Positions 9,278 through 44,800 are shown, counted from the stretch's first letter. The stretch is DNA of 64,000 bases from Haliotis rubra (GCF_003918875.1 NW_025766525.1:1178001-1242000); one strand, 5' to 3'. The notes: generated by a model not told the origin, from the letters alone. Translations and numbers: made by a program.

Positions 9278-9654
9278 TGAACTGCAGAACTCCAGATTAT
9301 ATTACTGAAGGAACTGAAAATAAAAGGAACCGAAACATTTTATTAATGACTTCATCATGATGTCTCCTATGTCAAGATACTCTCTAACTTTAGAACAAAG
9401 CTATGAGAATTAATAAATCATAAACCATCCCTGAAGAAGATGCTTCCTGTTTCAGATGTTGGAGGAGACATCCCATGATGCTGACTATGATAAAGGGACA
9501 GGATATGTTTGATTGAATTGTACATGGGAGCTGTGGTTTTATTGCACCATTCATCATCATGGCGACACCTATCCTACAGTGCTACATTAATCAACCACTG
9601 AGCCTGGTAGCACACTAGCAATTAACTTCAATAAAATGGATACCGCAGCAAGAC

Positions 9655-9750
9655 AGATCACTAATGTCACACATGGGTACATCAGTAGATCACAGATGTC
9701 ACACATGGGTACATCAGTCAGATCACAGATGTCACACATGGGTACATCAA
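9655..9750. repeat. 33-bp tandem repeat, ~3 copies
   Basis: AGATCACAGATGTCACACATGGGTACATCAGT recurring. Confidence 0.85.
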
Positions 9751-9921
9751 GGTCATGAAGAGCAGAGGAAGGCTATGAAGGCCTCATGGCTACCTTATTC
9801 CAACCTAACACTAATCATATATCTGACATTGCATCTCTCTCATAAAGTGGCACCTTCCGAAGAGGATGGATTTTCATTTATTTACCTTTTTCCATTATTT
9901 ATTACCCTTGGTTGCTAGCAA

Positions 9922-12468: not shown

Positions 12469-13218
12469 TAAACACATTAAACATTAATTTCACTCAATAT
12501 CAAACTGATGGTGTATGACCTTTGTAAAGGTACAGCAGGAAGGCCAGTACAGCTGTTTGTGCCCATGTTGATAATCATCCTTCTTTGTTTGCATATGGAC
12601 CAAAAAGTGCAGTAACCAAGCTCCGACAAACATTGTTTCCAGTTCCAATCTTACAAATCAACACGTTCAACAATATACAAATTTGCACACTGCCCTCATC
12701 TTCCTTGTAGGTAGACGTCTTCTCGCAAACTCTTTCTCATCTCTCATTGCCACGAGGTGCATAGATCATAGCAGACTTGTCAAAACTGACACAGCGGCCT
12801 CCACAGGAAGACTGTAGACTTAATATTTCTCCAACCTAATAAAGGGAGCCATTTGAAGCTTTGGGGCTAATTAAAGCTGCCCTATGAGGACAGGTTGTAG
12901 GACATATTATCTGTTCAACAGAAGTCAAGTCCTGACCTGTCGTCATCAATAATTGATTCTACAATTGGTTATCACTGTAAACGTGGAGCAAAGGAAGTGG
13001 TAGAGTGCTGTGTAAGTTCGGCAGACAGAAGGGTGATTATCGTCTGGCTGTTTTTAGAGAGGAAGGGTGACTTGTCTTGCTATGCAGAAATGGTCTGTCT
13101 TCAACCATACCACTCGCTCATGGCTAACCATCCTGATTTTAGTCTGTATATTTTACTTTAGCAGTTGTTCCTAACAAAGAACTGAAACAATCTGACATGC
13201 TAATGAGTGAGTGAGAAC

Positions 13219-13219
13219 T

Positions 13220-13290
<71 letters not shown>
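13219..13290. repeat. (TACA)n(CA)n(TA)n compound microsatellite
   Basis: Direct inspection. Confidence 0.95.
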
Positions 13291-13291
<1 letters not shown>

Positions 13292-13294
13292 TTA

Positions 13295-13835
13295 TACACT
13301 AATAAAAGCCAAATTTATTTTAAAGAAACATAATTTATCAAATCCTACTGTGTCTAGATTCAACAGAGGTAACTGTGGAACGTGTCGACATATTGCTGAA
13401 GGACACTCTGTAACTTTCACGAGACACGGAGAATTCTATGTAAAACAGAATTTTTACTGCTCTTCCAAAAACATAATATATGTCATAACATGCACAGGCT
13501 GTAATGAACCCGAGTTCGTGTCCACAAACAACAAATAAAGTGTCCTGAAACCCGATGTATCCCACTGAGTGAACATCTAGATGTCTGTGCGAAAGGAAAC
13601 CATATTAAATTTACAATATTTCCTTTTTATCAAGTACAAAATTCGGACAAAGTAAAACGAATTTTAAATGAACACTACTTCATAGACAAGTTCAAACCAA
13701 TGCTAAACCATTGCAAGCTGTGACCTTGTCGCTCTAGAATTTTGTCCATATTGTGACGTCACAATATATATGTAATGACGTCATACTGTAACTGCTACAA
13801 TCTCCCTGAAGAGAAAAAGAACGAAACATATCAGT
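13295..13835 (+). mobile_element. Penelope-like element 3' fragment: GIY-YIG endonuclease remnant plus 3' terminal region
   Basis: CGTC...FYCSSKNIIYVITCTGCNE, then after a deletion/frameshift RVRVHKQQI...SEHLDVC...FTIFPFY...EHYFIDKFKPMLN ending TGA 13721-13723; flanked by microsatellites. Confidence 0.8.
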
Positions 13836-13945
13836 CTGTGTGTGTGCTTGTGTGTGTGAGTGTGGTGAGAGAGAGTGTGTATAATTTCTACAAAGTTGTA
13901 AGTTTTGGTTAACATCAGTGGTGTTACATTGGTAAATCTGTATGT

Positions 13946-15598
13946 TTTGAATGTCCTGACAGATTCCTGTATCTGGCGGACCTTCCACTGGACTGTTGAA
14001 TGTCCTGACAGGCTCCTGTATCTGGTGGACCTTCCACTGGACTGTCGAATGTCCTGACAGATTCCTGTATCTGGTGGACCTTCCACTGGACTGTTGAATG
14101 GCCTGACAGACTCACGTATCTGGCGGACCTTCCACTGGACTGTTGAATGTCCTGACAGACCCCTGTATCTGGCGGACCTTCTACTGGACTGTTGAATGGC
14201 CTGACAGACTCCTGTATCTGGCGGACCTTCTACTGGACTGTTGAATGTCCTAACAGATTCCTGTATCTGGTGGACCTTCCACTGGACTGTTGAATGTCCT
14301 GACAGACTCCTGTATCTGGTGGACCTTCCACTGGACTGTTGAATGTGATGGCAGATTCCTGTATCTGGTGGACCTTCCACTGGACTGTTGAATGTCCTGG
14401 CAGACTCCTGTATCTGGCGGACCTTCCACTGGACTGTTGAATGTCCTGACAGACTCCTGTATCTGGTGGACCTTCCACTGGACTGTTGAGTGTCCTGACA
14501 GGCTCCTGTATCTGGTCGACCTTCCACTGGACTGTTGAATGGCCTGACAGACTCCTGTATCTGGCGGACCTTCTACTGGACTGTTGAATGTCCTGACAGA
14601 TTCCTGTATCTGGTGGACCTTCCACTGGACTGTTGAATGTCCTGACAGATTCCTGTATCTGGTGGACCTTCCACTGGACTGTTGAATGTCCTGACATTCC
14701 TGTATCTGGCGGACCTTCCACTGGACTGTTGAATGTCCTGACAGACTCCTGTATCTGGTGGACCTTCCACTTGACTGTTGAATGTCCTGACAAACTCCTG
14801 TATCTGGTGGACCTTCCACTGGACTGTTGAATGTCCTGACAGGCTCCTGTATCTGGTAGACCTTCCACTGGACTGTTGAATGTCCTGACAAACTCCTGTA
14901 TCTAGTGGACCTTCCACTGGACTGTTGAATGTCCTGACAAACTCCTGTATCTAGTGGACCTTCCACTGGGCTGTTGAATGTCCTGACAGACTCCTGTATC
15001 TGGCGGACCTTCCACTGGACTGTTGAATGTGATGGCAGATTCCTGTATCTGGTGGACCTTCCACTGGACTGTTGAATGTCCTGACAGACTCCTGTATCTG
15101 GCGGACCTTCCACTGGACTGTTGAATGGCCCGACAGACTCCTGTATCTGGTCGACCTTCCACTGGACTGTTGAATGTCCTGACAGACTCCTGTATCTGGC
15201 GGACCTTCCACTGGACTGTTGAATGGCCTGACAGACTCCTGTATCTGGCGGACCTTCCACTGGACTGTTGAATGTCCTGACAGACTCCTGTATCTGGCGG
15301 ACCTTCCACTACACTGTTGAATGTCCTGACAGACTCCTGTATCTGGTGGACCTTCCACTGGACTGTTGAATGTCCTGACAGATTCCTGTATCTGGTGGAC
15401 CTTCCACTCGACTGTTGAATGTTATGGCAAATTCCTGTATCTGGCGGACTTTCCACTGGACTGTTGAATGTCCTGACAGACTCCTGTATCTGGCGGACCT
15501 TCCACTGGACTGTTGAATGTTATGGCAAATTCCTGTATCTGGTGGACCTTCCACTGGACTGTTGATTATCCTGACAGACTCCTGTATCTGGTGGACTG
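13946..15598. repeat. 49-bp minisatellite, ~33 copies
   Basis: TTGAATGTCCTGACAGACTCCTGTATCTGGYGGACCTTCCACTGGACTG. Confidence 0.95.
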
Positions 15599-16125
15599 TG
15601 GATACCTGTAGCTCCTGGACTGTATATCTGTAGATCCTAGACTGCATATCTGTAGCTAGAAAAACTGTATATCTGTAGCTCCTAGACTGTATATTTCAAG
15701 ATCCTAGACTGTACATCTGTAGCTCCTAGACTGTATATCTGTAGCTCCTAGACTGTATATCCATGTATATATGTGTATATCCTTGTCAATATCTGTGTAT
15801 CCTTTTATACATATGTATATCCTTGACTACATCTGTATGTCCTTTTTTATATCTGTATATCCTTGTCTATATCTGTATGTCTTTCTATATCTGTATATCC
15901 TTGTCGATATCTGTATATCCTTGCCAATATCTCTATATCCTTTTCTATATATTTATATCCTTGTCTATATCTGTATATCCTTGTCTATATCTGTATATCC
16001 TTGTCTATATCTCTATATCCTTGACTATATCTCTATATCCTTGTCCATATCTTAATGTGCTTGTCCATATGTCTGTAGATCTTGTATATATCTGTGTATC
16101 CAAGTCTGAATATCTGTATATCCTG
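15598..16125. repeat. 22-bp repeat (TGTATATCTGTAGCTCCTAGAC) grading into 20-bp repeat (TATATCTGTATATCCTTGTC)
   Basis: Direct periodicity; transition near 15762. Confidence 0.9.
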
Positions 16126-16839: not shown

Positions 16840-18340
16840 GCACATAAACACACCGACACAGACACAGACACAAACACACAGACACGGACATAACACACAG
16901 ACACAGACATAAACAATCAGACATAAACACACAAACAGAAAAACACACACAAACATAAACAAACACACAGACATAACACACAGACACAAACACACAGACA
17001 TAACACACAGACACAGACATAAACACACAGACACAGACACGAACAAACACACAGACACAGACATAACACACAGACACAGACACGAACAAACACACAGACA
17101 TAAACACACAGACACAGAAATAAACACACAGACACAGACATAACACACAGACACAAACACAGACATAACACACAGACACAAACACAGACATAACACAAAG
17201 ACACAGACATAAACACACAGACACAGACACGAACAAACACACAGACACAGACATAACACACAGACACAGACATAAACACACAGACACAGACACGAACAAA
17301 CACACAGACATAAACACACAGACACAGACATAATGCAAAGACACAGACATAAACACACAAACACAGACATAAACACACAGACATAAACACACAAACAGAA
17401 AAACACACACAAACATAAACAAACACACAGACACAAACACAGACATAACACACAGACACAGACACGAACAAACACACAGACATAAACACACAGACACAGA
17501 AATAAACACACAGACACAGACATAACACACAGACACAAACACAGACATAACACACAGACACAGACATAAACACACAGACACAGACACGAACAAACACACA
17601 GACACAGACATAACACACAGACACAGACATAACACACAGACACAGACATAAACACACAGACACAGACACGAACAAACACACAGACATAAACACACAGACA
17701 TAACGCACAGACACAGACATAAACACACAGACACAGACATAAACACACAGACACAGACATAAACACACAGACATGAACACACAGACACAGACATAAACAA
17801 TCAGACACAGACATAAACACACAGACATAAACACACAAACACAGACATAAACACACACAGACATAAACACACAGACATGAACACACAGACACAGACATAA
17901 ACAATCAGACACAGACATAAACAATCAGACACAGACATAAACACACAGACACAGACACAAACATGAACACACAGACACAGACATAAACAATCAGACACAG
18001 ACATAAACAATCAGACACAGACATAAACACACAAACACAGACATAAACACACAGACATAAACAGATAAAAAAAAATATTAAAAAATAAGAAAAACAAAAC
18101 AAAAACAAAACACATAGACATAAACAAACAAACACAAACACTCAGACACAAACTCACAGACACAAACACGGACATAAACACACAGACACAGAGAAACACA
18201 GACATAAACACACACACACATACATAAACACACAGACACAGACAAACACACAGACACATGCACATACAAAATCACACTAATAGACATACACACAAGCATA
18301 GACACACATAAACACACATCACACAGTCAGCACATAAACA
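16840..18340. repeat. Complex CA/GACA/TAAA-rich microsatellite
   Basis: Low complexity; source of the Cys/Val-rich ORFs. Confidence 0.95.
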
Positions 18341-18579
18341 CAAACCACACAGTGCAGCATACAAGATGAAAGTCTCCAAAGGACTTTGCTTTGTTTACCC
18401 AAAAGGTAATAACAGTTCATCAATTTAATGGTTTGTAACTCAAAATGACTTTTGCTTTGATAATGATTGCACCATGAAGGTACCATAACAGTTGAATACA
18501 AGTTTTCTTAGTTTTGTATCTTGTACAATCATGTAAATGATACCCATGCTTTCAGATAGGTCACTCTTCATCATGGTAA

Positions 18580-19716
18580 CAGACCTGACCATGAAGTTAC
18601 AGTAGGTGTCCATCAGAACATGTTCACAGGACAACAGACCTGAACGTTTTTCAGTAGTTTTGTCCAGGTACAGATCATGTAAATGATACCCAGGAGGAAC
18701 ATACCAGAATGTGTGTACACTTCATCATGGTCAGATCAGACCTGAAGCGTGACAACAGTAGGTGTCCAGGTCAGAAGGTGTCCACAGGACAACAGACCTG
18801 AACGTGCTACAGTAGGTGTCCAGGTCAGAACATGTCCTCAGGACAACAGACCTGAACGTGCTACAGTAGGTGTCCTGGTCAGATCATGTCCACAGGACAA
18901 CAGACCTGAACGTGCTACAGTAGGTGTCCTGATCAGATCAACAGTAGGTGTCCAGGTCAGATCAACAGTAGGTGTCCTGGTCAGGTCAACAGTAGGTGCA
19001 GGTCAACAGGTGTCCTGATCAGATCAACAGTAGGTGTCCAGGTCAGAACATGTCCACAGGACAACAGACCTGAACGTGCTACAGTAGGTGTCCAGGTCAG
19101 ATCATGTCCACAGGACAACAGACCTGAATGTGCTACAGTAGGTGTCCAGGTCAGATCATGTCCACAGGACAACAGACCTGAACGTGCTACAGTAGGTGTC
19201 CTGGTCAGATCATGTCCACAGGACAACAGACCTGAAGTACACAGTAGGTGTCCTGGTCAGATCATGTCCACAGGACAACAGACCTGAACGTGCTACAGTA
19301 GGTGTCCAGGTCAGAACATGTTCACAGGACAACAGACCTGAATGTGTTACAGTAGGTGTCCAGGTCAGAACATGTCCACAGGACAACAGACCTGAACGTG
19401 TTACAGTAGGTGTCCTGGTCAGATCATGTCCACAGGACAACAGACCTGAACGTGCTACAGTAGGTGTCCTGGTCAGATCATGTCCACAGGACAACAGACC
19501 TGAATGTGCTACAGTAGGTGTCCTGGTCAGATCATGTCCACAGGACAACAGACCTGAACGTGCTACAGTAGGTGTCCTGGTCAGATCATGTCCACAGGAC
19601 AACAGACCTGAACGTGCTACAGTAGGTGTCCTGGTCAGATCATGTCCACAGGACAACAGACCTGAATGTGCTACAGTAGGTGTCCAGGTCAGATCATGTC
19701 CACAGGACAACAGACT
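18580..19716. repeat. 54-bp minisatellite (ACAGTAGGTGTCCWGGTCAGATCATGTCCACAGGACAACAGACCTGAAYGTGCT) with shortened internal units
   Basis: 18-aa periodicity. Confidence 0.95.
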
Positions 19717-19731
19717 ATATAGGTAATAAAA

Positions 19732-20705
19732 ATATGTTAACAACCCACATCAACTATATAGCTATGATTACAACCCACATTAATAAAAATAACTATGTTT
19801 ACGATCCACATCAACATTATAACTATGTTTACAATCAACATCAACATTATAACTATTGCAACCAACATCAACAATATAACTATGTTAACAACTGTATCAA
19901 CAATAAAGCTATGTTAACAACCATGTCAACAATGTAACTATGTTAACAACCTACACCAACAATATAACTATGCTAACAACCCCCATCAACAATATAACTG
20001 TTAACAACCACACCAACAATATAACTATGTTAACAAACCACATCAACAATATAACTATGTTAACAACCGTATCAACAATATAGCTATGTTAACAACCATG
20101 TCAACAATGTAACTATGTTAACAACCAACTATATAACTATATACTATAACTATATATAACAATATAACTATGTTAACAACCACATCAACAATATAACTTA
20201 TAACAACCACATCAACAATATAACTATGTTAACAACCCACATCAACAATATAACTATGTTAACAACCATATCAACAATAGAACTGTTAACAACCATGTCA
20301 ACAATGTAACTATGTTAACAACCCACATCAACAATGTAACTGTTAACAACCACATCAACAATATAACTATGTTAACAACCCACATCGACAATGTAACTGT
20401 TAACAACCATGTCAACAATGTGACTATGTTAACAACCCACATCGACAATGTAACTGTTAACAACAATGTCAACAATGTAACTATGTTAACAATCCACATC
20501 AACAATATAACTATGTTAACAACCATATCAACAATATAACTGTTAACAACCATGTCAACAATGTAACTATGTTAACAACCCACATCGACAATGTAACTGT
20601 TAACATCCCACATCAACAATATAACTATGTTAACAACCCACATCGACAATGTAACTCTTAACAACCATGTCAACAATGTAACTATGTTAACAACCCATAT
20701 CAACT
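19732..20705. repeat. AAC-rich 27-30-bp minisatellite
   Basis: AACTATGTTAACAACC(C)ACATCAACAATAT variants. Confidence 0.9.
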
Positions 20706-23325: not shown

Positions 23326-23334
23326 AGTGTCAGG

Positions 23335-23689
23335 AATATGTTCATTACACTATATGAATATGTTCTTCACTGTATGAATATGTTCTTCACTGTATGAATA
23401 TGTTCTTCACTGTATGAATATGTTCTTCACTGTATGAATATGTTCTTCACTGTATGAATATGTTCTCCACTGTATGAATATGTTCTTCACTGTATGAATA
23501 AGTTCTTCACTGTATGAATATGTTCTTCACTGTATGAATATGTTCTTCACTGTATGAATATATGTTCTTCACTGTATGAATATGTTCTCCACTGTATGAA
23601 TATGTTCTTCACTGTATGAATATGTTCTCCACTGTATGAATATGTTCTTCACTGTATGAATATGTTCTTCACTGTATGAATATGTTCTT
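23335..23689. repeat. 20-bp minisatellite (TGAATATGTTCTTCACTGTA); other pieces at ~21100-21160 and 30626-30735
   Basis: Direct periodicity; related units on the far sides of both neighbouring insertions. Confidence 0.95.
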
Positions 23690-23885
23690 GGGATCGGATG
23701 TGACGTCACATGGGCTGGACGTGTTTTGGATCGCTGAGAATATCAAGGTCAGTTTTTCGACGAAATATTGAAGAAACCCAATGGGTACAGGTTCTAAATA
23801 TGAAAAGTATGTAAGATAAACATTTCTGTTGTATAGCTGCGTCCTGAAAATAGATGAACTCTAAAAAAGTGGATTTTTATGGATT

Positions 23886-24434
23886 GTGCTTACTACTGTA
23901 TGGGACTCTGAACTGACATTACGACCCAACTTCAAACTTCCACAATGTTCCCCTCTCGTATGTTATATTGATACCAATTCGATTAAAAGAAACAGAGGAG
24001 ACGTGTTTACTTCGCCGGATACAGAAAATAAGAGACAACTATGTTGTTCGGCCCATGTGGAACAAAATGCGACGATGTAGTTGGTTCGTGTGGGGCAAAC
24101 CACGAATTTGTTGGTCGACATCTTGTCTAGGCTGGACAAGGACGATGACGACTTTTCCCCTCTCAAAGAACTCCAGGAGGAAATAGAAAACGTCGAGGAG
24201 GAGCAAGAAGAGACCCATCTGGATATCCAGAAGGTGCGGCAGATGCTAGAATCGATGTAAAAGTGGACCTACCTTTCGATAGCCGCCGTGTTTCTCTGGA
24301 AGGTCGTCTACAAGACCTGGAAGCACAGCACATCCCTGGCCGACAGACCATTCAACAGACAGGCCAACGAGAAGACAGAAATGCCCAAACCTGTTTCCAA
24401 GGTCTACTCCGGGCATCCCCACTACATGCAGTAG
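23886..24434 (+). pseudogene. Decayed ORF: acidic coiled coil, hydrophobic segment and Pro-rich tail (virus/Polinton accessory-like; N-terminus may be LINE ORF1)
   Basis: One frame through stops at 24078-24080 and 24258-24260: ...LLVDILSRLDKDDDDFSPLKELQEEIENVEEEQEETHLDIQKVRQMLESM*KWTYLSIAAVFLWKVVYKTWKH...PKPVSKVYSGHPHYMQ*. Confidence 0.5.
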
Positions 24435-24592
24435 AAAAAAAAATAGAGAGAGAGAGAGATGCGATACATTTTCTTGCAATTGGAATATATATATTTTGTA
24501 CATCGGTTTCGAAAAGCATCGTGTGTGTGTGTGTTTTTTGGGGTTTTTTTTGCGATAGAAGCTTTTCCCGCCCGAGGTCTGGGAGCAGCAAC

Positions 24593-25766
24593 TCAACTTC
24601 TCGATTGTCTTTCCTTTTCGATATGGACGAGTAGCAGATTTTGCCGAGCCTGCTCAGAAACGGTCCACCCACCAACCATAGGTGTCTCTATTCCGCCGGC
24701 GTCTCGAATCGTTTCTCGTATATTGCAGCCGTAGACTGGAATCATTTCTCCAGTTGGCAAATCGAGAAGCAGCAACAGTCAGTTCTTCCCTTCCTATTTC
24801 GCTACGGCAAACTTTTTGCATGTGTAGATTACTTCTGGAACGTCTACGGCTTTTCGGTGTTCGCTGCACGGAGGGACTGCCACTTCCATATCCTTGGGCC
24901 TGCCGTAGTTGGGCAAAGGGGTATGCCATATATTGCTCCGTCCCTGTGGTAGCTCTGCTTTTCCCGATAGCTGTCGGAAGACACAAGAATCTTTCTTCTT
25001 GCACGGACAATTGTCCACCAATTTGTCGAGGAGGAGTGTGTACCGTATGCTCCAGAAAGCGCAGGCGTCGTCGTACAGGTTCTCTATGTTCGAGAAACAA
25101 CCGTCGAACACGATTTCTTCTGGAACCTCGAATGGGAGTCGTTCCTTGGGTGTGTAGTCTATCGCTTTCTTTTTCAAGAGAACGCATTTCTTGCTGTCGA
25201 AGCAGTGGTCGATGGCGCCACACTTGCATGTAGAGTTGTCAGGTCCGAAGAGAGTGGGGAGTTCTGATAGAGCGGCGAGGCAGTCGATGCATCGGTTGTG
25301 TCTGTCCTTGGGGTCCAGGTAGTAGTCGTCGGCGAGAACAATTCGGAGTTTGCCTGCTGCGGGTAGAAATTGGTGGTATGAGTAGATGTAGACGAAATCG
25401 ACTATTTTGCCGTCTTCTACGAGTGGGCTAAAGCACAGCAAATAGAGTTCCAGAAACTGGCGAGGGATTTGGTAGCGGTCGTAGAAAGTGTGTCCCGATT
25501 GCTCCAGGATTTGTTTCTCTCGGTCGGAAAGCAACATAGGGCGACACTTCTCCAGCAGGGTCGAAGAAGAAGGTCTTGAAGACTTCTGCCATGTTGGGAG
25601 TTCTCGTCGTCTGTGGCTTGGGGTCTATACCATCTCGGATTCGTGTATATCTGGTTTGCGATATGTGGTACTTTCTCTTCGCTTCCCGAAGGGACAAACG
25701 ACCTGATCAGATCTCGGTATAGGCTTCACGCGAGAGCTTGGTTCCTGGCATTTTCTCTATATCCAT
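24593..25766 (-). pseudogene. Decayed ~390-aa intronless gene: N-terminal HTH-like segment plus Cys-rich unknown domain
   Basis: MDIEKMPGTKLSREAYTEI*SGRLSLREAKRKYHISQTRYTRIRDG; overlaps the open upstream frame of ORF 24794..25537, which continues in frame past two stops into ORF 24593..24775. Confidence 0.6.
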
Positions 25767-26079
25767 ACACCTGCATAGCTCTAATTGGAGTGCACTTGCA
25801 CTGGGAGACGAAAAGTGGTCTTATCGAAGTTTTGTGCAAAACACTCATTTGTGGGTGGCTGTGGGAGCGGAATTAGCCAGTATGGAAGCTTCTAGGCAGG
25901 GTGCACCTATGCTACTTTTTCTCCCCACTACTATACTACTTTTGATTGGCAACATCTACAGATTTGTTGTTGATAATGCTGTGCTATATCTAACATAACA
26001 CATGAATGACTCATTATCAATCAACATGACTGAATTGACCATATGTACGAAACATGCCCATCCTATATGTGCAGAACAT

Positions 26080-26340
26080 TGTGTGTGTACATACTTAATG
26101 TACACTGAGGACCATATAGTCCATAATTATGTGTGTGTACATACTTAATGTACACTGAGGATCATATAATCCATAATTATGTGTGTGTACATACTTAATG
26201 TACACTGAGGATCATATAGTCCATAATTATGTGTGTGTACATACTTAATGTACACTGAGGATCATATAGTCCATAAGTATGTGTGCGTACATACTTAATG
26301 TACACTGAGGATCATATAGTCCATAATTATGTGTGCATAC
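26080..26340. repeat. 50-bp minisatellite, ~5 copies, inside the composite block
   Basis: GTGTGTGTACATACTTAATGTACACTGAGGATCATATAGTCCATAATTAT. Confidence 0.95.
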
Positions 26341-27458
26341 AAATCGCTGTCTGCAAGTAGATGATGCGTAAAATACAAACATGCAGAAACACAAACATGT
26401 GAATGCCAACATATCTCTATTGTCAGTTATTGTCATTTTTCTTGCACCAAGTTATATCCTGATAATATATTAATATACTCTACTCCAAAGATTTGATAAT
26501 CCAAATGATGAACTAGCCCATGCATACTTTACTTTGGGAAATTGTTGTCTTGCACTAAAAGTGCAGTATACTCTTCTGAATGTGATATATATATGATTGG
26601 CTTCTCATTATATTTCACAAAGTGTGTAATATTCTCTCTGAATTTTATATATATTTCTTTAGCTTAGTATAGTACACAAAGGGCTGATACCTTCCCTTGA
26701 AAGCAGTATATATATATACTTGCTTATTATACTACACCAAGAGTGTAATATTTTCCTTTAATTGTGTTTGCCGCATCATACTTCATTACAATCCAGATAG
26801 TGACGATCAGACTGTTTGTGCCTGCTATATTACTACAATAGTCATATAAAAGATTAGAATATGGGTTTGCATTTTCTGTTAACAGATAATCATTTTAAAT
26901 TGAATTGGATCCGTTATCTTAATTGACATTTTCGCTTACTATCACCCACATATATGACAAGTTATAAACTAATATTTACAGTATTCTTTGCCTCACAAGT
27001 TGGGGTATCCAACTATCCACTGCTCAAACACCGGTCACAACCTGTTAGGAAATGTACAACATGTGAACGTAACGCACGTGCAGAACGTGTCTCTCATGAC
27101 TCGCGTGTTTCACCAGCGACTGCGCTATACTTGATGTAATTTTGATTCAATATTTTCATATTTATGTCCACTTTCAGTAACTGGTTCTAAATTTAGTGAT
27201 TTACTTATTTGGTAATTTAAACCCGTGGGTTTCAAACCTTTTTGGTTTTAAAAACTCAATGAGTATTATCATTTTATTATTTTTTCTTTCTTTTTGTGTT
27301 TATTTTGTAAAAACTTTCTTTGAAAAATATGACCAATTTTCAACAAAACATTTTCACAATTATCATATTTCACGTGCACGTGTGCTTGATGACTTTTTGG
27401 TTTCACAATGTGATCCCACTGGCGGCTTTTCTAAATCTGTTGTGGATACATACGTAAC

Positions 27459-30394
27459 ATGTCTGTTGACATAACGCAGTACAGGCAGGCAGTGGGATGC
27501 TGTGCAGTTACACTTCATGCAAGAAGTGCATATAATCGTCAGATCTATATATTTCATTTTAACTTTAGATGTTTGTATCAACCGTCTATTTCCATATTTA
27601 TCACCATCTTTTACTTTGTTGCGGAGATATTCACCCGAACCCGGGACCAAATAATGATAGAAACTACAGATAATACACTCAATGTCAGAAGTCTCAAAGA
27701 TAAAATTGACATCATTCATGCAGAGATTTTAGACTGTGATGTGACATGTTTAACAGAAACCTGGCTGAATGATAATATTAATAGTAATGATATACTAATT
27801 CCAGGTTTTCACATTCCATTCAGGAAAGACCGTTTAACACGAGGCGGCGGCGTGGCCATTTATGTTAAGCAATACTTATGTCTGTAGAGAGTATGGAAGC
27901 TTTAGACATTGTGGGTCTTGAAGCGTTATGGGTAAAAATAAAATGTAAAGCTAGAAATTATCTCATAGGTACATTTTACCACGCTGACAAAAGTGAACAA
28001 TACTTGGATTTGATTGTTCAATCAATTGATATGGCGATTGATTTAAACATGTTTACTGTTAATATAGTTATTCAAAATGAAAGCAACATTAAAATTGAAA
28101 CGCTAAAACGTTTGTATGGGATAAACCAGATCGTAAATGCACCAACACGAATTACGCATAGCTCTAGGACTTTAATTGATTTGCTTTTTGTTACCCATGA
28201 AAATAGCATGCTTAGCTCAGGCATACTCGATCCCATATGCAGTGATCATTGTCCAATTTTCTTAACGGTAAAAGATAAAATTACCAAAACTGATGTTGTT
28301 ATTAAAAGACTCGTGTACGATTTTAAATCTATGGATAAAGAGTGTTTTCAAAGACATCTTAACGAAATTGATGAAAAAGAAATATTTTCCTCTTGTAATA
28401 TTGACACTGCAGTAGAAATCCTAATGGAAAAAATAAAGTACATATTAAACATCAGTACACCAAACAGACTGGTCAATGTTAGAGCTAAAGATCCCTTATG
28501 GATGAATAGTGAAATCCGTTCTGCAATGCGGAAGTATAACCGTTTTCCTAAAAAAGCTAAAAATCGAAACCGTCGTTCCGATTGGGCTAATTTCCGATTA
28601 GTCAGAAACAAAGTTGTCAACTTGCACTGGGAGAGACGAAAAGACATGGCGAAAAGTTTAGCTCCTCTATTAACAAAATTATTTAACTTGTCTCTTCAGA
28701 AATTCACGTTTCCAGCCGTCTGGAAGGAAGCGTCAGTCATGCCTCCCCATTAAAAAAATAGTGTAAATGAACGTTCCAATTACCGACCGGTCGCACTGAC
28801 GAGCTGTTTGTCTAAAGTTTTGGAAACATGTGTTTTTAAACATGTATTTAATTACTTTAGAGAGTCACACAATGATATTTTAACCAATTTACAATCGGGT
28901 TTTATGCCAGGCGACTCTACCGCTAACCAATAAACTTATTACTATGATTTTATAGCGAAAGGACTTGATGAAGGTAAAGAGGTCAGAGCTGTTTTTTGTG
29001 ACATTAGTAAGGCATTTGATAAGGTATGGCACAAGGGCATCATTTCTAAACTTAAAAACTATGGCATTGGTGGATCACTTTTGAATTGGTTTGAAAGTTA
29101 TTTACAAAACAGATCACAAAAAGTTGTCATTAATGGATACAGTTCCGATTATAAACCTGTGCTGTTGCTGGCGTCCCACAAGGTTCTGTATTGGGATCCT
29201 TACTTTTTATTATATACATAAATGATTTAGTAGATGGTATAAAGAGCCACATATGTTTATTTGCTGACGACACCTTACTTTACGTAATTGTAGATGATCA
29301 CGATACTGCCGCATCCTGTCTGAATGATGATTTAAACCGTATATCTAGCTGGGCAGACAAGTGGCAAGTTACCTTCAACCCTGATAAATCCCGAAACAAT
29401 AAATTTTTCTCGTAAACATAAAAATGACACAATTCCAACCTTGAACATGAACCAAACCCTGATACAAGAAGTGGAAAGTCATAAACACCTAGGTATAACC
29501 CTACAGAGTGATTGTGGATGAAAAAGTAATATTGAGGACATTGTTAAAAAAGTTAGCCCCATGATAAATTGTCTCCAAAGTTTTAAATATCGCCTCTCCA
29601 GAAAAAACGCTATGAAACCATGTTAAAATCGTTTGTGATGCCGATATTTGACTATTGTTGTCATATCTGGGATAATTGTACAAATGATCAGTCCCTCATT
29701 CTTGAATGGTTACATCTAGATGCACTTCGTACAACATGCGGCGCAGTTCGTGGCACTAGTCATCATAGGTTAAATAGGTTCCAAACCCCTAAAAGAAAGA
29801 AGGTGCGACATTACATTAATAATTGTTTACAAGATGAATAACGATCTCGCACCTGACGACCTCTGTGACCTTGTCCCTAACTTTGTCTCTGAAAACAGTC
29901 AATATAATCTCTGTAATAAACTTAAGTTACAAACAATAAATTGTAGGACTAAAATATATGAAAAATTGCTCCTACCTGACACAATTAAAATTTGGAATTC
30001 ATTACCTGATAATTTAGTATTCGCTAACTCAATCAGTGAATTCAAATCTCTGCTTAAAAATGATGAATCAAAAAATTATCTAGATCTAAATTATGGCAGT
30101 CGATTCTGTCAGATCGTACACTGTCGACTTAAGCTCGGCTGTAATGATTTGAATGCGGATAAAGTAAATAGACACATTTCTAACAACCCTGAATGCGCTT
30201 GTGGATACCACAATGAAGATACTGTTCATTATCTTTTTACATGTAAGTTATATACTGCTGTTAGAAATAATACCTACTTCTATGTAAATAGCCACAATCT
30301 CCAAACTGTGTTATATGGAATACCTCTGGCAAACAACAATGTCAATAAGAACATAATAGAGTCTCTGCACCAATACATCTTTAAATCAAAATGA
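27459..30394 (+). pseudogene. CR1-like LINE ORF2 (APE endonuclease plus reverse transcriptase), frameshifted and internally deleted
   Basis: LNVRSL, CLTETWL, RKDR...GGGVAIYV, SDHCPI (APE); NYRPVALTS, FCDISKAFDKVWH, GVPQGSVLG, LFADDT (RT); C-terminal CACG...HYLFTC; linker deletion near 28630. Confidence 0.92.
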
Positions 30395-31271
30395 TTTGAT
30401 AAATTATTCTAGACAATTATATGCAATCAATTAATGAAGTGTAGCTGCAAGCTCAAGGTTTTATAAGCACCTACAACGCACATATATGATTTAATTTGTC
30501 GTTTTTTGTATCCAGTTCCTGTGTATTTTGTTTAAATGATATACATACTGGTGAGGTATTGATATAAGCAGAGTTCTGCTTGTTTACCAAACCAGATTCT
30601 CTAGAAATAAAAATATGTTTGAACCAATATTTTCTTCACTGTATGAATATTTTCTTCACTGTATGAATATGTTCTTTACAATACATGAATATGTTCCTTA
30701 CAGTATAAACATGTTCCTTACACTGCATGAATGTTCAAAGCCCATCCTGGAACTAACTCCGCTGAGAACTGTCAGAGATACTGAGTCATTAAACATCCCA
30801 CACACAACACAGATGACTAAACTCCGCACACTGAGACAAATTTATATCACTCATTTCTAAGGAAATGCATAAAAAATACAACAGAAAGTGATATAAATAC
30901 CATTATTTCTTCATTAAAGGCATTGAAGTAATAATTAACAAAGCTGTTCCTGTTCTTGCCAGTTTAGAATTCCCTCCAAGGTTGTGAGGTGTAAATGGTT
31001 TTCAATCAATTTTTCAAAAGTATATAATTGGTCAGGTGAGTGAAACATAGAAATTGTATTCTTTAAAAGAGGAAAGGGAGCTAACAAGACCTTGCATTAT
31101 TTATTTTAATATATTGCATGACTGAATTTCTGTAAAGAGGGAAAATAAAGACAGTTCTCAGGACATTGATATGGTAAAATTTGTGCAGGCAAATTCATAA
31201 TCCACAATACAATAAAACAATGAAATTTAGCTGAACTAACTAGAACTGGGTGGTAACAGGCTAAGCAGTAA

Positions 31272-31577
31272 GACACATGGGGATTGTTAACATTGTGCAT
31301 GGTTCTCAAATGATGACACATGGGGATTGTTAACATTGTGCATGGTTCTAAAATGATGACACATGGGGATTGTTAACATTGTGCATGGTTCTCAAATGAT
31401 GACACATGGGGATTGTTAACATTGTGCATGGTTCTCAAATGATGACACATGGGGATTGTTACCATTGTGCATGGTTCTCAAATGATAACATAGTGCATGG
31501 TTCTCAAATGGGCATTGTTAACATTGTGCATGGTTTCTCAAATGCATGTTCTAAAATGATGACATTGTGCATGGTTC
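31272..31577. repeat. 43-bp minisatellite, ~6 decaying copies
   Basis: GACACATGGGGATTGTTAACATTGTGCATGGTTCTCAAATGAT. Confidence 0.9.
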
Positions 31578-32224: not shown

Positions 32225-32770
32225 ATCTTTATCACTGTGTATGCTTCCGATATATACCAAGGTGTTCATTGTTCTATCTTTATCAGGCAGTGTATGCTTC
32301 CATACACCACACACCCTGCCAAGGTGTCTATTGTTCTATCTTTATCACATACACCACACATATGCCTTGTTCTATCTTATATTGTGTATGCACATACACC
32401 ACCCTGCCTAGGTGTTCTATTTTATCATTGTGTTTCTATCTTTATCATCTCAGTGTATGCTTCCATACACCACACATACCCTGCCAAGGTGTCTATTGTT
32501 CTATCTTTATCACTGTGTATGCTTCCATACACCACACATACCCTGCCAAGGTGTCTATTGTTCTATCACTATCACAGTGCATGCTTCCATACATCACACG
32601 TACCCTGCCAAGGGGTCTATTGTTCTATCTTTATCACTGTGTATGCTTCCATACACCACACATACCCTGCCAAGGTGTCTATTGTTCTATCTTTATCACA
32701 GTATATGCTTCCATACACCACACGTACCCTGCCAAGGGGTCTATTGTTCTATCTTTATCTACTATCTTTG
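32225..32770. repeat. 62-bp minisatellite starting at the SINE's right TSD
   Basis: TCTATCTTTATCACTGTGTATGCTTCCATACACCACACATACCCTGCCAAGGTGTCTATTGT. Confidence 0.9.
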
Positions 32771-33095
32771 TTTCCAACATCACTGATCAAGGATGTAAAC
32801 ACTGTTTCCAACATCTATGATCAAGGATGTAAACACTGTTTCTAACATCACTATATGATCAAGGATGTAAACACTGTTTCTAACATCACTATATGATCAA
32901 GGATGTAAACACTGTTTCCAACATCACTATATGATCAAGGATGTAAACACTGTTTCCAACATCACTATATGATCAAGGATGTAAACACTGTTTCTAACAT
33001 CACTATATGATCAAGGATGTAAACACTGTTTCTAACATCACTATATGATCAAGGATGTAAACACTGTTTCCAACATCACTATGATCAAGGATGTG
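32770..33095. repeat. 38-bp minisatellite, ~8 copies
   Basis: TGATCAAGGATGTAAACACTGTTTCYAACATCACTATA. Confidence 0.95.
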
Positions 33096-34884: not shown

Positions 34885-37800
34885 ATATGTATCTGTGACA
34901 ATACACGTCCTGACATACCCTGGCCTATAAGCTGTACACAGAATATGTATCTGTCACAATACACGTCCTGACATACCCTGACCTATATGCTGTACACAGA
35001 ATATGTATCTGTCACAATACACGTCCTGACATACCCAGGGCTATAAGCTGTTTAGTACACAGAATATGTATCTGTCACAATACACATCCTGCCATACCCA
35101 GGCCTATATGCTGTACACAGAATATGTATCTGTCACAATACACATCCTGACATACCCAGGCCTATAAGCTGTACACAGAATATGTATCTGTCACAATACA
35201 CATCCTGACATACCCAGGCCTATAAGCTGTTAGTACACAGAATATGTATCTGTCACAATACACGTCCTGACATACCCTGGCCTATATGCTGTACACAGAA
35301 TATGTATCTGTCACAATACACGTCCTGACATACCCTGGCCTATAAGCTGTTAGTACACAGAATATGTATCTGTCACAATACAAGTCCTGACATACCCAGG
35401 CCTATATGCTGTACACAGAATATGTATCTGTCACAATACACGTCCTGACATACCCTGGCCTATAAGCTGTACACAGAATATGAATCTGTCACAATACACA
35501 TCCTGACATACCCTGGCCTATATGCTGTACACAGAATATGTATCTGTCACAATACACATCCTGACATACCCTGGCCTATATGCTGTACACAGAATATGTA
35601 TCTGTCACAATACACGTCCTGACATACCCTGGCCTATAAGCTGTTAGTACACAGAATATATATCTGTCACAATACACATCCTGACATACCCTTGCCTATA
35701 AGCTGTTAGTACACAGAATATGTATCTGTCACAATACACATCCTGACATACCCTGGCCTATATGCTGTACACAGAATATGTATCTGTCACAGTACACGTC
35801 CTGACATACAGGCCAGCTGTACACAGAATATGTATCTGTCACATAAGTCCTGACATACCCACAGAATATGTATCTGTCACAGTACACATCCTGACATACC
35901 CAGGCCTATAAGCTGTACACAGAATATGTATCTGTCACAATACAATGACATACCCAGGCCCTGACATACCCTGGACATACCCAGGCCTATAAGCTGTACA
36001 CAGAATATGTATCTGTCACAATACACGTCCTGACATACCCTGGCCTATAAGCTGTACACAGAATATGTATCTGTCACAATACATGTCCTGACATACCCTG
36101 GCCTATAAGCTGTCACACAGAATATGTATCTGTCAATACACTGCGTCCTGACATACCCTGGCCTATAAGCTGTACACAGAATATGTATCTGTCACAATAC
36201 ACGTCCTGACATACCCTGGCCTATAAGCTGTACACAGAATATGTATCTGTCACAATACACGCCCTGACATACCCTGGCCTATAAGCTGTACACAGAATAT
36301 GTATCTGTCAGCAATACACGTCCTGACATACCCTGGCCTATAAGCTGTACACAGAATATGTATCTGTCACAATACACGTCCTGACATACCCTGGCCTATA
36401 AGCTGTACACAGAATATGTATCTGTCACAATACACGTCCTGACATACCCTGGCCTATAAGCTGTACACAGAATATGTATCTGTCACAATACACGTCCTGA
36501 CATACCCAGGCCTATAAGCTGTACACAGAATATGTATCTGTCAGCAATACACGTCCTGACATACCCTGGCCTATAAGCTGTACACAGAATATGTATCTGT
36601 CACAATACACGTCCTGACATACCCTGGCCTATAAGCTGTACACAGAATATGTATCTGTCACAATACACGTCCTGACATACCCTGGCCTATAAGCTGTACA
36701 CAGAATATGTATCTGTCACAATACACGTCCTGACATACCCAGGCCTATATGCTGTACACAGAATATGTATCTGTCACAATACACGTCCTGACATACCCTG
36801 GCCTATAACTGGTACACAGAATATGTATCTGTCACAATACAGTCCTGACATACACCGGCCTATAAGCTGTACACAGAATATGTATCTGTCACAATACATG
36901 TCCTGACATACCCTGGCCTATAAGCTGTACACAGAATATGTATCTGTCACAATACACGTCCTGACATACCCTGGCCTATAAGCTGTACACAGAATATGTA
37001 TCTGTCACAATACACGTCCTGACATACCCAGGCCTATAAGCTGTACACAGAATATGTATCTGTCACAATACACGTCCTGACATACCCAGGCCTATAAGCT
37101 GTACACAGAATATGTATCTGTCACAATACATGTCCTGACATACCCAGGCCTATAAGCTGTACACAGAATATGTATCTGTCACAATACACGTCCTGACATA
37201 CCCAGGCCTATAAGCTGTACACAGAATATGTATCTGTCACAATACACGTCCTGACATACCCAGGCCTATAAGCTGTACACAGAATATGTATCTGTCACAA
37301 TACATGTCCTGACATACCCTGGCCTATAAGCTGTACACAGAATATGTATCTGTCACAATACACGTCCTGACATACCCTGGCCTATAAGCTGTACACAGAA
37401 TATGTATCTGTCACAATACACGTCCTGACATACCCTGGCCTATAAGCTGTACACAGAATATGCCTATATCTGTACACAGAATACATCTGTCACAATACAC
37501 ATCCTGACATACCCAGGCCTATAAGCTGTACACAGAATATGTATCTGTCACAATACATGTCCTGACATACCCAGGCCTATAAGCTGTACACAGAATATGT
37601 GTCACAATACACGCCCTTGACATACCCTGCCTATAAGCTGTACACAGAATATGTATCTGTCACAATACACGTCCTGACATACCCTGGCCTATAAGCTGTA
37701 CACAGAATATGTATCTGTCACAATACACGTCCTGACATACCCTGGCCTATAAGCTGTACACAGAATATGTATCTGTCACAGTACATGTCCTGACATACCC

Positions 37801-41814: not shown

Positions 41815-44800
41815 AGCCCACAGCCTACAACTGACTACACAGCCTACAGCATCTCACTACAACAGCCTACATTGCACTATGATGCCTACAACTGACTACA
41901 ATGATTCGCACTATGATAGGCTACAACTGACTACATCACACTACAATAGCCTACAACTGACTATATGGCTCTGTGATAGCCTACAACTGACTACATATCA
42001 CTATGATAGCCTACAACTGACTACATCACACTATGATAGCCTACAATGGACTACATCACACTATGATAGCCTACAACTGACTACATATCACTATGATAGC
42101 CTACAACTGACTACATCGCACTATGATAGCCTACAACGGACTACATCACACTATGATAGCCTACAACTGACTACATCGCACTACGATAGCCTACATCTGA
42201 CTACATCGCACTACAATAGCCTACAACGGACTACATCACACTATGATAGCCTACAACTGACTACATCGCACTATGATAGCCTACAACTGACTACATCACA
42301 CTATGATAGCCTACAACTGACTACATCACACTATGATAGCCTACAACTGACTACATCACACTACAATAGCCTACAACTGACTACATGGCTCTGTGATAGC
42401 CTACAACTGACTACATCGCACTATGATAGCCTACAACTGACTACATCGCACTATGATAGCCTACAACTGACTACATCGCACTACAATAGCCTACAACTGA
42501 CTACATCGCACTATGATAGCCTACAACTGACTACATCGCACTATGATAGCCTACAACTGACTACATCGCACTTCAATAGAGTAGAACTTAATACATCACA
42601 CTACAATAGCCTACAACTGACTACAACACACTATGATAGCCTACAACTGACTACATCGAACTACGATAGCCTACAACTGACTACATCACACTACGATAGC
42701 CTTCAACTGACTACATCGCACTACAATAGAGTAGAACTGACTACATCACACTATGATAGCCTACAACTGACTACAACACACTATGATAGCCTACAACTGA
42801 CTACATTGCACAACGACAGCCTATAACTGACTACATCACACTACGATAATCTACAACTGACTTAAAGTAACATCGCACTACAATAGATTAGAACTGAATA
42901 CATCACACTACAATAGCCTACAACGGACTACATCGCACTATGATAGCCTACAACTGACTACATCGCACTATGATAGCCTACAACTGACTACATCGCACTA
43001 TGATAGCCTACAACTGACTACATCACACTATGATAGCCTACAACTGACTACATACATACATACATACAAATACTTGTATAGCGCTAATATCCGTAATCCG
43101 CTCAAAGGCGCTCTGGCTCTAAGATGGTCTAGATATCACATAGAGTTCAAATGCTTCAGCAAAGAGACACGTCTTCAGATTTGAATTAAAAACAGCTAAA
43201 TCTGGTTGTGTTCTGAGGTGAGATGGAAGATTGTTCCAGAGATGAGGGCCAGTCGTCTCGAGTGACCTGTCACAATATGTTTTTGTCCTTGTCACAGGAA
43301 TTGTCAAAAGACACTGGTCATTTGATCGGAGTGAACGTACAGGAGTATAACGGTGGAACAGATCACAGAGGTACTGAGGAGCTAGACCATGTAAACTTTT
43401 GAAAACAAGGAGTAGAGTTTTATATTTTATGCGGTAGTGGACGGGAAGCCAATGAAGTGAGTGAAGAACGGGAGTAATGTGGTCTGATTTCTTTGATTGA
43501 GAGACCACTCTGGCTGCAGTATTCTGCACCTTCTGAAGCTTGTGTACAAGATAATTTGGGAGGCCCACAAGAAGCGCATTACAGTAGTCAAGATGAGATG
43601 TTACATATGCCTGAATAAGAGATGCTGTAGTCTTGACGTCCAGGTATCGTCGAATCATGCCGATGTTGTGAATGTGGTAGTACGCCCTTCTACAGATGTT
43701 ATTGATGTGTGGCTCCATGGACAGTGAAGAATAAAAAATAACTCCCAAGTTTCGTACCTCATGGTTTGGCTGAATCTCACACTGACCGATGCTGAATTTA
43801 GGAAGAGAGATACTGGGTTGGAGACGCTTAGGGTGGAAAACTATGAGTTCAGTTTTATCATCATTCAGTTTGAGGTAGTGTGACGACATCCAGATTTTGA
43901 TGCAGCTGACACACTCTTCAATGGTGAGAAATGAAGACACAGCTGATGAAGAAAGTAAGGGTTTGAATGATATATAAATTTGAGTGTTGTCAGCATATAA
44001 ATGCAGTCCAAGGTTGAAGGATCTGACGATATCACCTAGAGGAGAAGTATAAACAGTGAAAAGTAGAGGTCCAAGAACCGATCCCTCGGGCACGCCATAA
44101 GCAAGATCCTTAGGACTGGAGATGTGACCATCAATGATCACCGATTGATGACTATCTGCTATGTATGACTCAAACCACTGAAGAACAGTTCCTCTAATAC
44201 CCATCCTGGTCTCAAGTGTATGCATCAGAATAGTATGGTCGATAGTATCGAAGGCACTACTCAAATCAAGTAGAACCAATACTGCAGCACCATCTTTGTC
44301 GCACTACGATAGCCTACAACTGACTACCTCACTATGATAGCCTACAACTGACTACATCGCACTATGATAGCCTACAACTGACTACATCACACTACAATAG
44401 CCTACAACTGACTACATGGCTCTGTGATAGCCTACAACTGACTACATCGCACTATGATAGCCTACAACTGACTACATCGCACTATGATATCCTACAACTG
44501 ACTACATCACACTGCGATAGCCTACAACTGACTACATGGCTCTGTGATAGCCAACAACTGACTACATCGCACTATGATAGCCTACAACTGACTACATCGC
44601 ACTATGATAGCCTACAACGGACTACATCGCACTATGATAGCCTACAACTGACTACATCGAACTACGATAGCCAACAACTGACTACATCACACTATGATAG
44701 CCTACAACTGACTACAACACACCATGATAGCCTACAACTGACTACACCACACTGCGATAGCCTACAACTGACTACATCACACTGCGATAGCCTACAACTG

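Follow-up and report, generated by a model that had tools for sequence, protein, structure and literature searches.

A Composite Block in a Haliotis rubra Satellite Array Apparently Combines a Decayed LINE with a Fragment of an Unclassified Element Family

Identification of a Composite Block in a Satellite Array

In a stretch of 64,000 nucleotides from Haliotis rubra (GCF_003918875.1 NW_025766525.1:1178001-1242000, hereafter the window), a 20-bp satellite is interrupted by a block of 6.9 kb (23690-30625), which appears to be a composite of two unrelated, decayed selfish elements. Judged by homology, the 3' part of the block, running from about 27569, or perhaps from about 26400, to 30625, is a long interspersed nuclear element (LINE), and the 5' part, which covers at least 24031-26391, is a truncated copy of a compact, unclassified cassette element that bears two convergent genes and is known from the genomes of marine invertebrates. 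The existence of both parts, the homologies of each and the break in the satellite array were all observed, and from them we infer that cassette and LINE were most likely joined and mobilized together in a single, one-off LINE-mediated event, a history to which we assign a probability of roughly 0.45.

An earlier note on this DNA had described the block as a CR1-like retrotransposon apparently carrying a virus-like two-gene cassette in place of its ORF1. The arrangement that it reported was recovered: within a single block, a LINE on the 3' side is preceded by a foreign cassette of two CpG-rich genes on the 5' side. Its account of how the two belong together fared less well, as set out with the evidence below.

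The left part of the satellite (unit AATATGTTCTTCACTGTATG) extended from 23334 to 23689, with 17.6 copies and a 95% match in Tandem Repeats Finder (TRF) and in agreement with a pattern search, and ended 11 bases into a unit. The right part restarted at phase 0 at position 30626 and had decayed by 30736 according to TRF. When the unit was searched with up to 3 mismatches it was found on both flanks only, with no occurrence within 23690-30625, and the block is therefore foreign DNA lying in one gap of the array, in keeping with the single block seen in the earlier note. The last 11 bases of the left array (23679-23689) and the first 11 bases of the right array (30626-30636) both correspond to the first 11 bases of the satellite unit, with a single mismatch between them, and form a candidate target-site duplication (TSD).

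The block opens with GGG, followed by the two motifs already noticed at its start, namely the palindrome ATGTGACGTCACAT at 23698-23711, which resembles a cAMP response element (CRE), and GGACGTGTTTT at 23717-23727. Its composition sets it apart from its surroundings, the observed/expected (o/e) CpG ratio being 1.03, 0.92, 0.54 and 0.80 across the block, 0.19-0.37 in the flanks and 0.33 in the entire window. Within the 64 kb, no further copy of the block was detected apart from its own 50-bp tandem array. The Rfam and tRNA scans of the window were both empty, and no runs of N occurred in the stretches read or compared.

Characterization of the LINE

The LINE is encoded on the plus strand and comprises an open reading frame (ORF, 27569-30394), identified by Pfam matches and a 2A-like motif, and a 3' untranslated region (UTR) with its tail (30395-30625). 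The ORF consists of a 2A-like leader, an apurinic/apyrimidinic (AP) endonuclease, a reverse transcriptase (RT) and a C-terminal region. Pfam searches on pieces of 27459-29412 returned Exo_endo_phos (7.5e-6), Exo_endo_phos_2 and RVT_1 (2.3e-7), and stops and frameshifts were found to break the frame in at least seven places. The tail carries an AATAAA about 15 nt from its end, with neither a poly(A) run nor a clear microsatellite.

The 2A-like motif GDIHPNPGP is located at 27623-27649, in a third frame and directly before the endonuclease (...LLLCCGDIHPNPGP), and departs from the consensus GD(V/I)ExNPGP at one position, with His for Glu. Motifs of this type have been reported in the N-terminal region of ORF2p from AP endonuclease (APE)-type LINEs of molluscs and other invertebrates, belonging to the CR1, L2, Rex1, Crack and Ingi clades, and the APE-type LINEs that bear them mostly have no ORF1 (PMC3708506, Odon et al. 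2013). No coding signal was detected in 25941-27568, hence no ORF1 with PHD or esterase-type domains lies upstream of ORF2. Since the window copy pairs a 2A-like motif with the published single-ORF pattern, the missing ORF1 is best regarded as a family trait and not as a replacement, and the LINE appears to be of a single-ORF APE/RT type that never had an ORF1 to lose. The idea of a cassette standing in place of ORF1 was thus abandoned. The order of 2A-like motif, AP endonuclease and RT, the mollusc host and the lack of both ORF1 and poly(A) are all shared with the 2A-type single-ORF LINEs (PMC3708506), from which the window copy differs by the His in its motif and by being dead.

The proteins nearest to the LINE were 48-68% identical, unnamed and located on short contigs. 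They were too distant for a comparison of UTRs, and the 5' end of the LINE was therefore not located through its relatives. The CR1 label given previously holds insofar as an AP endonuclease followed by an RT is present in one ORF, and should be read only as CR1/L2-group-like.

Characterization of the Cassette Genes

The cassette (24031-25940; GC 0.49, CpG o/e 0.92) consists of two convergent, intronless, GC- and CpG-rich pseudogenes, in agreement with the earlier description. Homologues were found for both, and the two genes are true homologues of proteins encoded elsewhere and not chance ORFs. Searches of the cassette genes and of their intact relatives against Pfam, PHROGs and PDB sequences returned nothing meaningful.

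The small gene lies on the plus strand at 24031-24434, its start being approximate, and contains one or two premature stops. It was recognized by tblastx and protein alignment against three related loci, where it is homologous to a 198-aa protein (locus L006), to a 259-aa protein (L004) and to a second H. rubra copy (L002). Its product shows an acidic coiled-coil stretch, a hydrophobic stretch that is probably a membrane span, and a short tail. Distant relatives carry an N-terminal helix-turn-helix, which was unrecognizable in the window and H. rubra copies. A spacer of 158 bp, the length given in the earlier note, with GA and GT microsatellite runs (24435-24592) separates the stop codons of the two genes.

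The large gene occupies the minus strand at 24593-25766 and has been broken at three premature stops and one or more frameshifts. The longest of its pieces (247 aa) matched P0001, a 289-aa protein from a Tara Oceans contig, with an E value of 9e-53, as well as part of one Haliotis rubra gene model, and the gene as a whole is collinear with the intact 511-aa protein P0003. The layout runs from a helix-turn-helix at the N terminus through a Cys-rich middle to a beta-barrel domain at the C terminus. The region upstream of the large gene (25767-25940, minus strand) could be aligned with the Haliotis rubra copy, the blastn match extending to 25912, and further upstream stands the 50-bp tandem array of 5-6 copies (26019-26391).

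Two segments of the block lie outside these features. The first, 23690-24030 on the plus strand (CpG o/e 1.03), gave no match to the related loci by blastn or tblastx and could be the promoter or leader of the small gene, or else the 5' end of the LINE. The second is an AT-rich stretch on the plus strand (26392-27568) with neither coding signal nor relative, the CpG o/e being 0.54 for 25941-27458; it may be the outer end of the cassette element, the 5' UTR of the LINE, or both. Detectable similarity to the cassette relatives was limited to 24031-25940, and none of them resembled 25941-27500. A search for terminal inverted repeats (TIRs), direct repeats and a TSD around the window cassette yielded only short matches at chance level, as the earlier note had seen for TIRs and TSD, and the 14-nt inverted pair at 23707/24046 is within the chance expectation for 4 kb.

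Relatives of the Cassette

The family of the large gene is rare, with 30 matches in a profile search of 1.84 billion representative proteins; in a collection of 15 billion proteins, no match came from JGI/IMG. The loci retrieved (L001-L010) were compared with the window, and the convergent gene pair was found to recur without this LINE in the Tara contig (L001), in a Haliotis rubra contig (L002), in four long ENA contigs (L003, L004, L005 and L008) and in two short contigs (L006 and L007). None of L001-L010 showed similarity to the window LINE or to either of the segments 23690-24030 and 25941-27500. The relatives occur in multiple copies, most of them broken, and their distribution is patchy.

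The Haliotis rubra contig (QXJH01001127) shares 75-77% DNA identity with the window cassette. It holds a 3.2-kb inverted duplication of the cassette (23663-26881), in which two inverted copies of the large gene, with arms of about 1.26 kb that are 90-95% complementary, surround one small gene. The annotated "fibropellin-1-like" model of this contig (10001-25726) splices EGF-like exons to a decayed piece of the large gene; only residues 179-241 derive from the element, and the EGF-like part is unrelated to it. The H. rubra annotation thus contains a chimeric gene model that includes such an element.

In a 624-kb ENA contig (L004), a palindrome of 6.6 kb (9294-15869), 97-99% perfect, surrounds a non-palindromic centre of 154 nt, and each of its arms carries tandem arrays, the large gene and the small gene convergent on it. 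A single partial arm in another contig of the same assembly (L003) begins at the identical terminal sequence, and the outer end of the family is therefore defined, with several copies present per genome. Copies within one assembly were 94-99% alike and shared the exact outer terminus at different loci. A possible 4-bp flanking duplication (CTTG) was seen in a single case, at the palindrome of L004. Just outside the outer terminus of L003 (5126-6889 and 7991-8641) lie a gene for a piggyBac-type transposase (DDE_Tnp_1_7) and a fragment of an unrelated endonuclease.

The two short contigs come from independent samples and have all their genes intact. Upstream of the small gene stands a third one, encoding 524 aa, and the contig end shows 21-nt repeats and the beginning of an inverted copy. 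Large inverted duplications were present in three independent assemblies of HiFi-type, nanopore hybrid and short-read origin (L004 9294-15869, L002 23663-26881 and L006 5168-5794). An array of 44-66-nt units was found upstream of the large gene in all five loci having that region (the window, L002, L004, L006 and L008), with unit sequences that are unrelated between loci. As the 50-bp array of the window sits at the position of the arrays in its relatives, the element copy reaches at least 26391.

The window thus shares with the family the large gene with its helix-turn-helix, Cys-rich and OB-like regions (OB, oligonucleotide/oligosaccharide-binding), convergent on a small coiled-coil membrane gene, and the upstream tandem array. 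The ligase-fold third gene, the defined outer terminus and the inverted-dimer arrangement were not found there. With outer terminus and third gene missing, the window cassette is therefore a fragment and not a whole transposed unit, and it appears to be a single truncated arm of an unclassified element family. No family with these features has been described in the literature searched, where the papers on the H. rubra assembly alone were relevant.

Another, more remote protein family (P0016, P0026 and P0028) resembles the large gene in its C-terminal barrel domain alone, and a member of this barrel-only family adjoins a decayed large-gene copy in L005 (11558-11936).

Origin of the Cassette-LINE Junction

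In the history that we favor, a source LINE would have lain downstream of a copy of the cassette element, and an RNA started within or upstream of that element would have read through into the LINE. Alternatively, the LINE RT may have switched template at the 5' end of the LINE. In either case the chimeric RNA would have been copied into the satellite by target-primed reverse transcription. The array shows one gap with no unit inside, and its right part overlaps the left by 11 bp; the tail of the LINE, on the 3' side of the block, abuts the satellite, as target-primed reverse transcription predicts; and the GGG at the start of the block is consistent with the 5' end of a capped RNA, a connection familiar from full-length L1 insertions. 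The density of breaks is alike in cassette and LINE, which, together with the raised CpG o/e throughout the block, suggests similar residence times for the two parts. A single event on a chimeric RNA would also need no coincidence of insertion sites.

Foreign passengers at the 5' side of LINEs are known from L1 5' transductions, from U6-L1 chimeras and from the LINE-mediated capture of non-retroviral sequences. The block resembles 5' transductions and template-switch chimeras in having foreign DNA at the 5' side of the LINE, one gap in the target and the 3' end of the LINE at the junction. It differs from them in that its passenger of 2.7-3.7 kb comes in turn from another selfish element, of which it is a fragment, and in that the TSD is not firm.

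Several observations weigh against a single joint event. In an array of 20-bp units, an 11-bp duplication looks identical to a loss of 9 bp. The one mismatch of the candidate TSD (T for G) occurs also in the next unit rightward, which mildly favors no duplication, and the right-hand 11 bases may simply be an original T-variant satellite unit. The TSD of 11 bp with one mismatch proposed earlier is therefore retained as possible, given the overlap actually present, and is not diagnostic, so that the interruption of the array is established and a single target-primed event is not proven by it. Moreover, the 1.1-1.5 kb that separate the LINE ORF from the cassette are assigned to neither element, and the closest proteins are only 48-68% identical, too distant to place the 5' end of the LINE. 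Finally, the CRE-like palindrome 8 nt from the start of the block would also suit an internal LINE promoter, a reading that would turn 23690-24030 into LINE sequence and the cassette into a nested insert.

This last point leads to the strongest of the alternatives, two independent insertions, which we hold to be possible though less likely than the joint event. The cassette fragment would either be nested in the 5' UTR of the LINE, with both 23690-24030 and about 26400-27568 belonging to that UTR, or would have been inserted side by side with the LINE with some loss of target. Besides the position of the palindrome and the weakness of the TSD evidence, this history draws on the related loci, in which the cassette family inserts on its own amid other transposons, and tandem repeats are not unusual in LINE 5' UTRs. 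However, neither edge of the cassette shows a TSD, a TIR or the family terminus, and the 50-bp array, standing where the relatives have theirs, places at least 24031-26391 in the cassette element and not in the LINE. The CpG o/e of 23690-24030 (1.03) is nearer to that of the cassette than to that of 25941-27458 (0.54), these being short segments, and the side-by-side version requires two hits at one point of the satellite.

A LINE family that has spread with the two-gene cassette as its standing cargo, replacing ORF1, we regard as improbable. One block in one satellite gap with the LINE at its 3' end would be expected of it as well, and the small gene and the LINE have the same orientation. 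The endonuclease fragment found about 550 bp outside the outer terminus of L003 also points away from the element, as the LINE does here, yet it is dissimilar to the window LINE; a conserved cassette-LINE link through this fragment was rejected, as tblastx showed no relation between the two. The absence of ORF1 is accounted for by the 2A-type design, the cassette is fragmentary and has one of its genes antisense to the LINE, and both cassette and LINE are dead. None of the fetched relatives L001-L010 was linked to this LINE or to the segments that flank the cassette in the window, an outcome that, as far as the available data reach, is one of those named by the earlier note as counting against its reading, and no second copy was present in the 64 kb. 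A standing cargo-bearing LINE family, which the earlier note had offered as an undescribed CR1 family, is therefore unsupported by what was checked, and from that proposal it is the capture by a LINE, through read-through or template switch, that we retain as the likeliest way in which the junction arose. The composite is probably an ordinary outcome of LINE activity, whether a 5' passenger or a neighboring insertion, and demonstrates no new cargo-carrying LINE design.

Predicted Folds of the Family Proteins

The fold of the large protein was explored on an AlphaFold model of the intact relative P0003, which had a mean predicted local distance difference test score (pLDDT) of 61, and by Foldseek matches. 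The N-terminal helix-turn-helix and two C-terminal beta-barrel domains were modeled confidently, and the Cys-rich middle had no confident structure. The best Foldseek matches were tandem OB-fold DNA binders, including Teb1, RPA70, POT1, HIN-200, baculovirus LEF-3 and phage single-strand-binding proteins, all of them weak (E values from 1e-3 to 1e-1). We propose with moderate confidence that the large protein binds DNA, probably in single-stranded form.

The product of the third gene (P0044, L006 3655-5229) gave a model with a pLDDT of 89.8 and a predicted template modeling score (pTM) of 0.88. Foldseek matched it to ATP-dependent RNA ligases (T4 Rnl1, archaeal Rnl3 and the ligase domain of Trl1) with probability 1.0 and E values down to 4e-7. 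The likeness to these ligases is thus one of predicted fold, for a gene missing from the window; no match to ligases was obtained at the sequence level, and the nucleophilic lysine at the motif-I position was absent from all 42 relatives compared. With this lysine missing, classical adenylyl transfer by a protein of this predicted fold is therefore doubtful.

The family of the third gene is bigger than that of the large gene, with 63 matches on contigs from 2 kb to several Mb. Four loci reached through P0068 (L011-L014) are JGI/ENA metagenome contigs of up to 273 kb, with 70% GC and dense coding. The same contig was found in several metagenomes, and almost no Pfam matches were obtained (ERCC4 and a weak Gad2). 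These contigs, which may belong to a prokaryote, a plasmid or a large virus, have the ligase-fold gene alone in common with the element.

Nature of the Passenger Element

We consider the passenger to be most probably a genomic mobile element. No polymerase, capsid, packaging ATPase, integrase, protease or transposase was detected in or beside any family copy examined.

A tentative alternative, clearly behind the genomic element, is a fragment of a DNA virus or episome captured as an endogenous viral element, the relatives being further captures of the same lineage. The compact, intronless, convergent genes with GC and CpG values far from those of the host would suit such an origin, as would the intact three-gene copies on short contigs from two independent samples, the inverted-dimer forms with a small non-palindromic centre, the iteron-like arrays and the rare, patchy occurrence of the family (30 matches in 1.84 billion representatives); the predicted fold of the large protein, moreover, weakly matches viral single-strand DNA-binding proteins such as LEF-3. 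Against it, neither capsid nor polymerase nor packaging gene lies in or near any copy, copies that are 94-99% alike and share an exact outer terminus at different loci behave as a genomic repeat family, and the family of the third gene occurs also on Mb-scale contigs and on prokaryote-like contigs of 70% GC.

That the passenger represents two ordinary genes of the host, or their decayed duplicate, is very unlikely. One relative is annotated within the H. rubra "fibropellin-1-like" gene, yet this model is chimeric, with the 3.2-kb inverted cassette duplication as its locus; the relatives are mostly broken, patchy and present in multiple copies; and the composition is unlike that of the host.

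Known element classes were considered and set aside. The Polinton-like segment suggested by the earlier note found no support, since the cassette, its intact relatives and their neighbors contain no Pfam match to PolB (pPolB), integrase, capsid, FtsK-type packaging ATPase or protease, and Polinton/Maverick or adintovirus-like elements were rejected on these grounds. A parvovirus- or densovirus-like origin was rejected because no Parvo_NS1 or capsid family was detected and no terminal inverted repeats are present in the window, and a cut-and-paste TIR transposon because none of the three genes has a transposase domain and no TIR or TSD surrounds the window cassette. The capture by a LINE of an ambisense RNA-virus segment was likewise rejected, since the relatives, with their tandem arrays, palindromes and exact termini, are repeats at the DNA level, and no RNA-dependent RNA polymerase was found.

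Two types of element recall the family in their architecture, and the likeness is one of resemblance only. The foldback or long-TIR transposons, such as Drosophila FB and Galileo, may be compared with the relatives that form long inverted repeats with internal arrays, one of them with a possible 4-bp duplication. Unlike them, the L004 palindrome comprises the whole element including its genes, no DDE or other transposase was detected, and the window holds a single truncated arm. Densovirus-like ambisense viruses and hairpin-ended replicons share with the family the compact convergent genes, the short asymmetric centre of the dimers and the arrays near the ends, and the replicative dimers of hairpin-ended linear replicons are palindromes. 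In contrast to these, the family has no NS1/SF3 helicase, capsid or polymerase, its copies are dispersed repeats, and the window shows no terminal hairpin.

We tentatively suggest, as a reading that is rather less probable than its opposite, that the cassette is the fossil of an undescribed compact, self-propagating DNA element of marine invertebrates, either a transposon or an episome- or virus-like replicon. Its gene set would comprise a helix-turn-helix/OB-fold DNA-binding protein, a lysine-less protein of RNA-ligase fold and a small membrane protein, as predicted from the models and protein layouts. Such an element would have iteron-like arrays and a tendency to form inverted dimers, without the hallmark enzymes of known transposon and virus classes, and the locus would record its capture and movement by a LINE.

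The main interest of the block lies in this passenger, a rare family with intact copies and with inverted dimers of defined ends, which has no sequence match in Pfam or PDB and no known transposase, polymerase or capsid. If the family propagates itself, its mechanism would fall outside the current classes of transposons and viruses, and the lysine-less protein of predicted ligase fold and the putative OB-fold DNA binder would be the obvious candidates for that mechanism.

Genomic Surroundings

A second ORF with an RT domain (RVT_1, 5.8e-17) is located on the minus strand at 43122-44279; it belongs to another retroelement and has no DNA similarity to the LINE of the block. The surroundings of the block are very rich in repeats: six or more distinct tandem arrays, with periods of 20-120 nt and lengths of up to 1 kb, lie no farther than 6 kb from it to the left or right. 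Tandem arrays near the block were mapped at 18000-20704, 31272-31490, 32434-33094 and 34885-35944.

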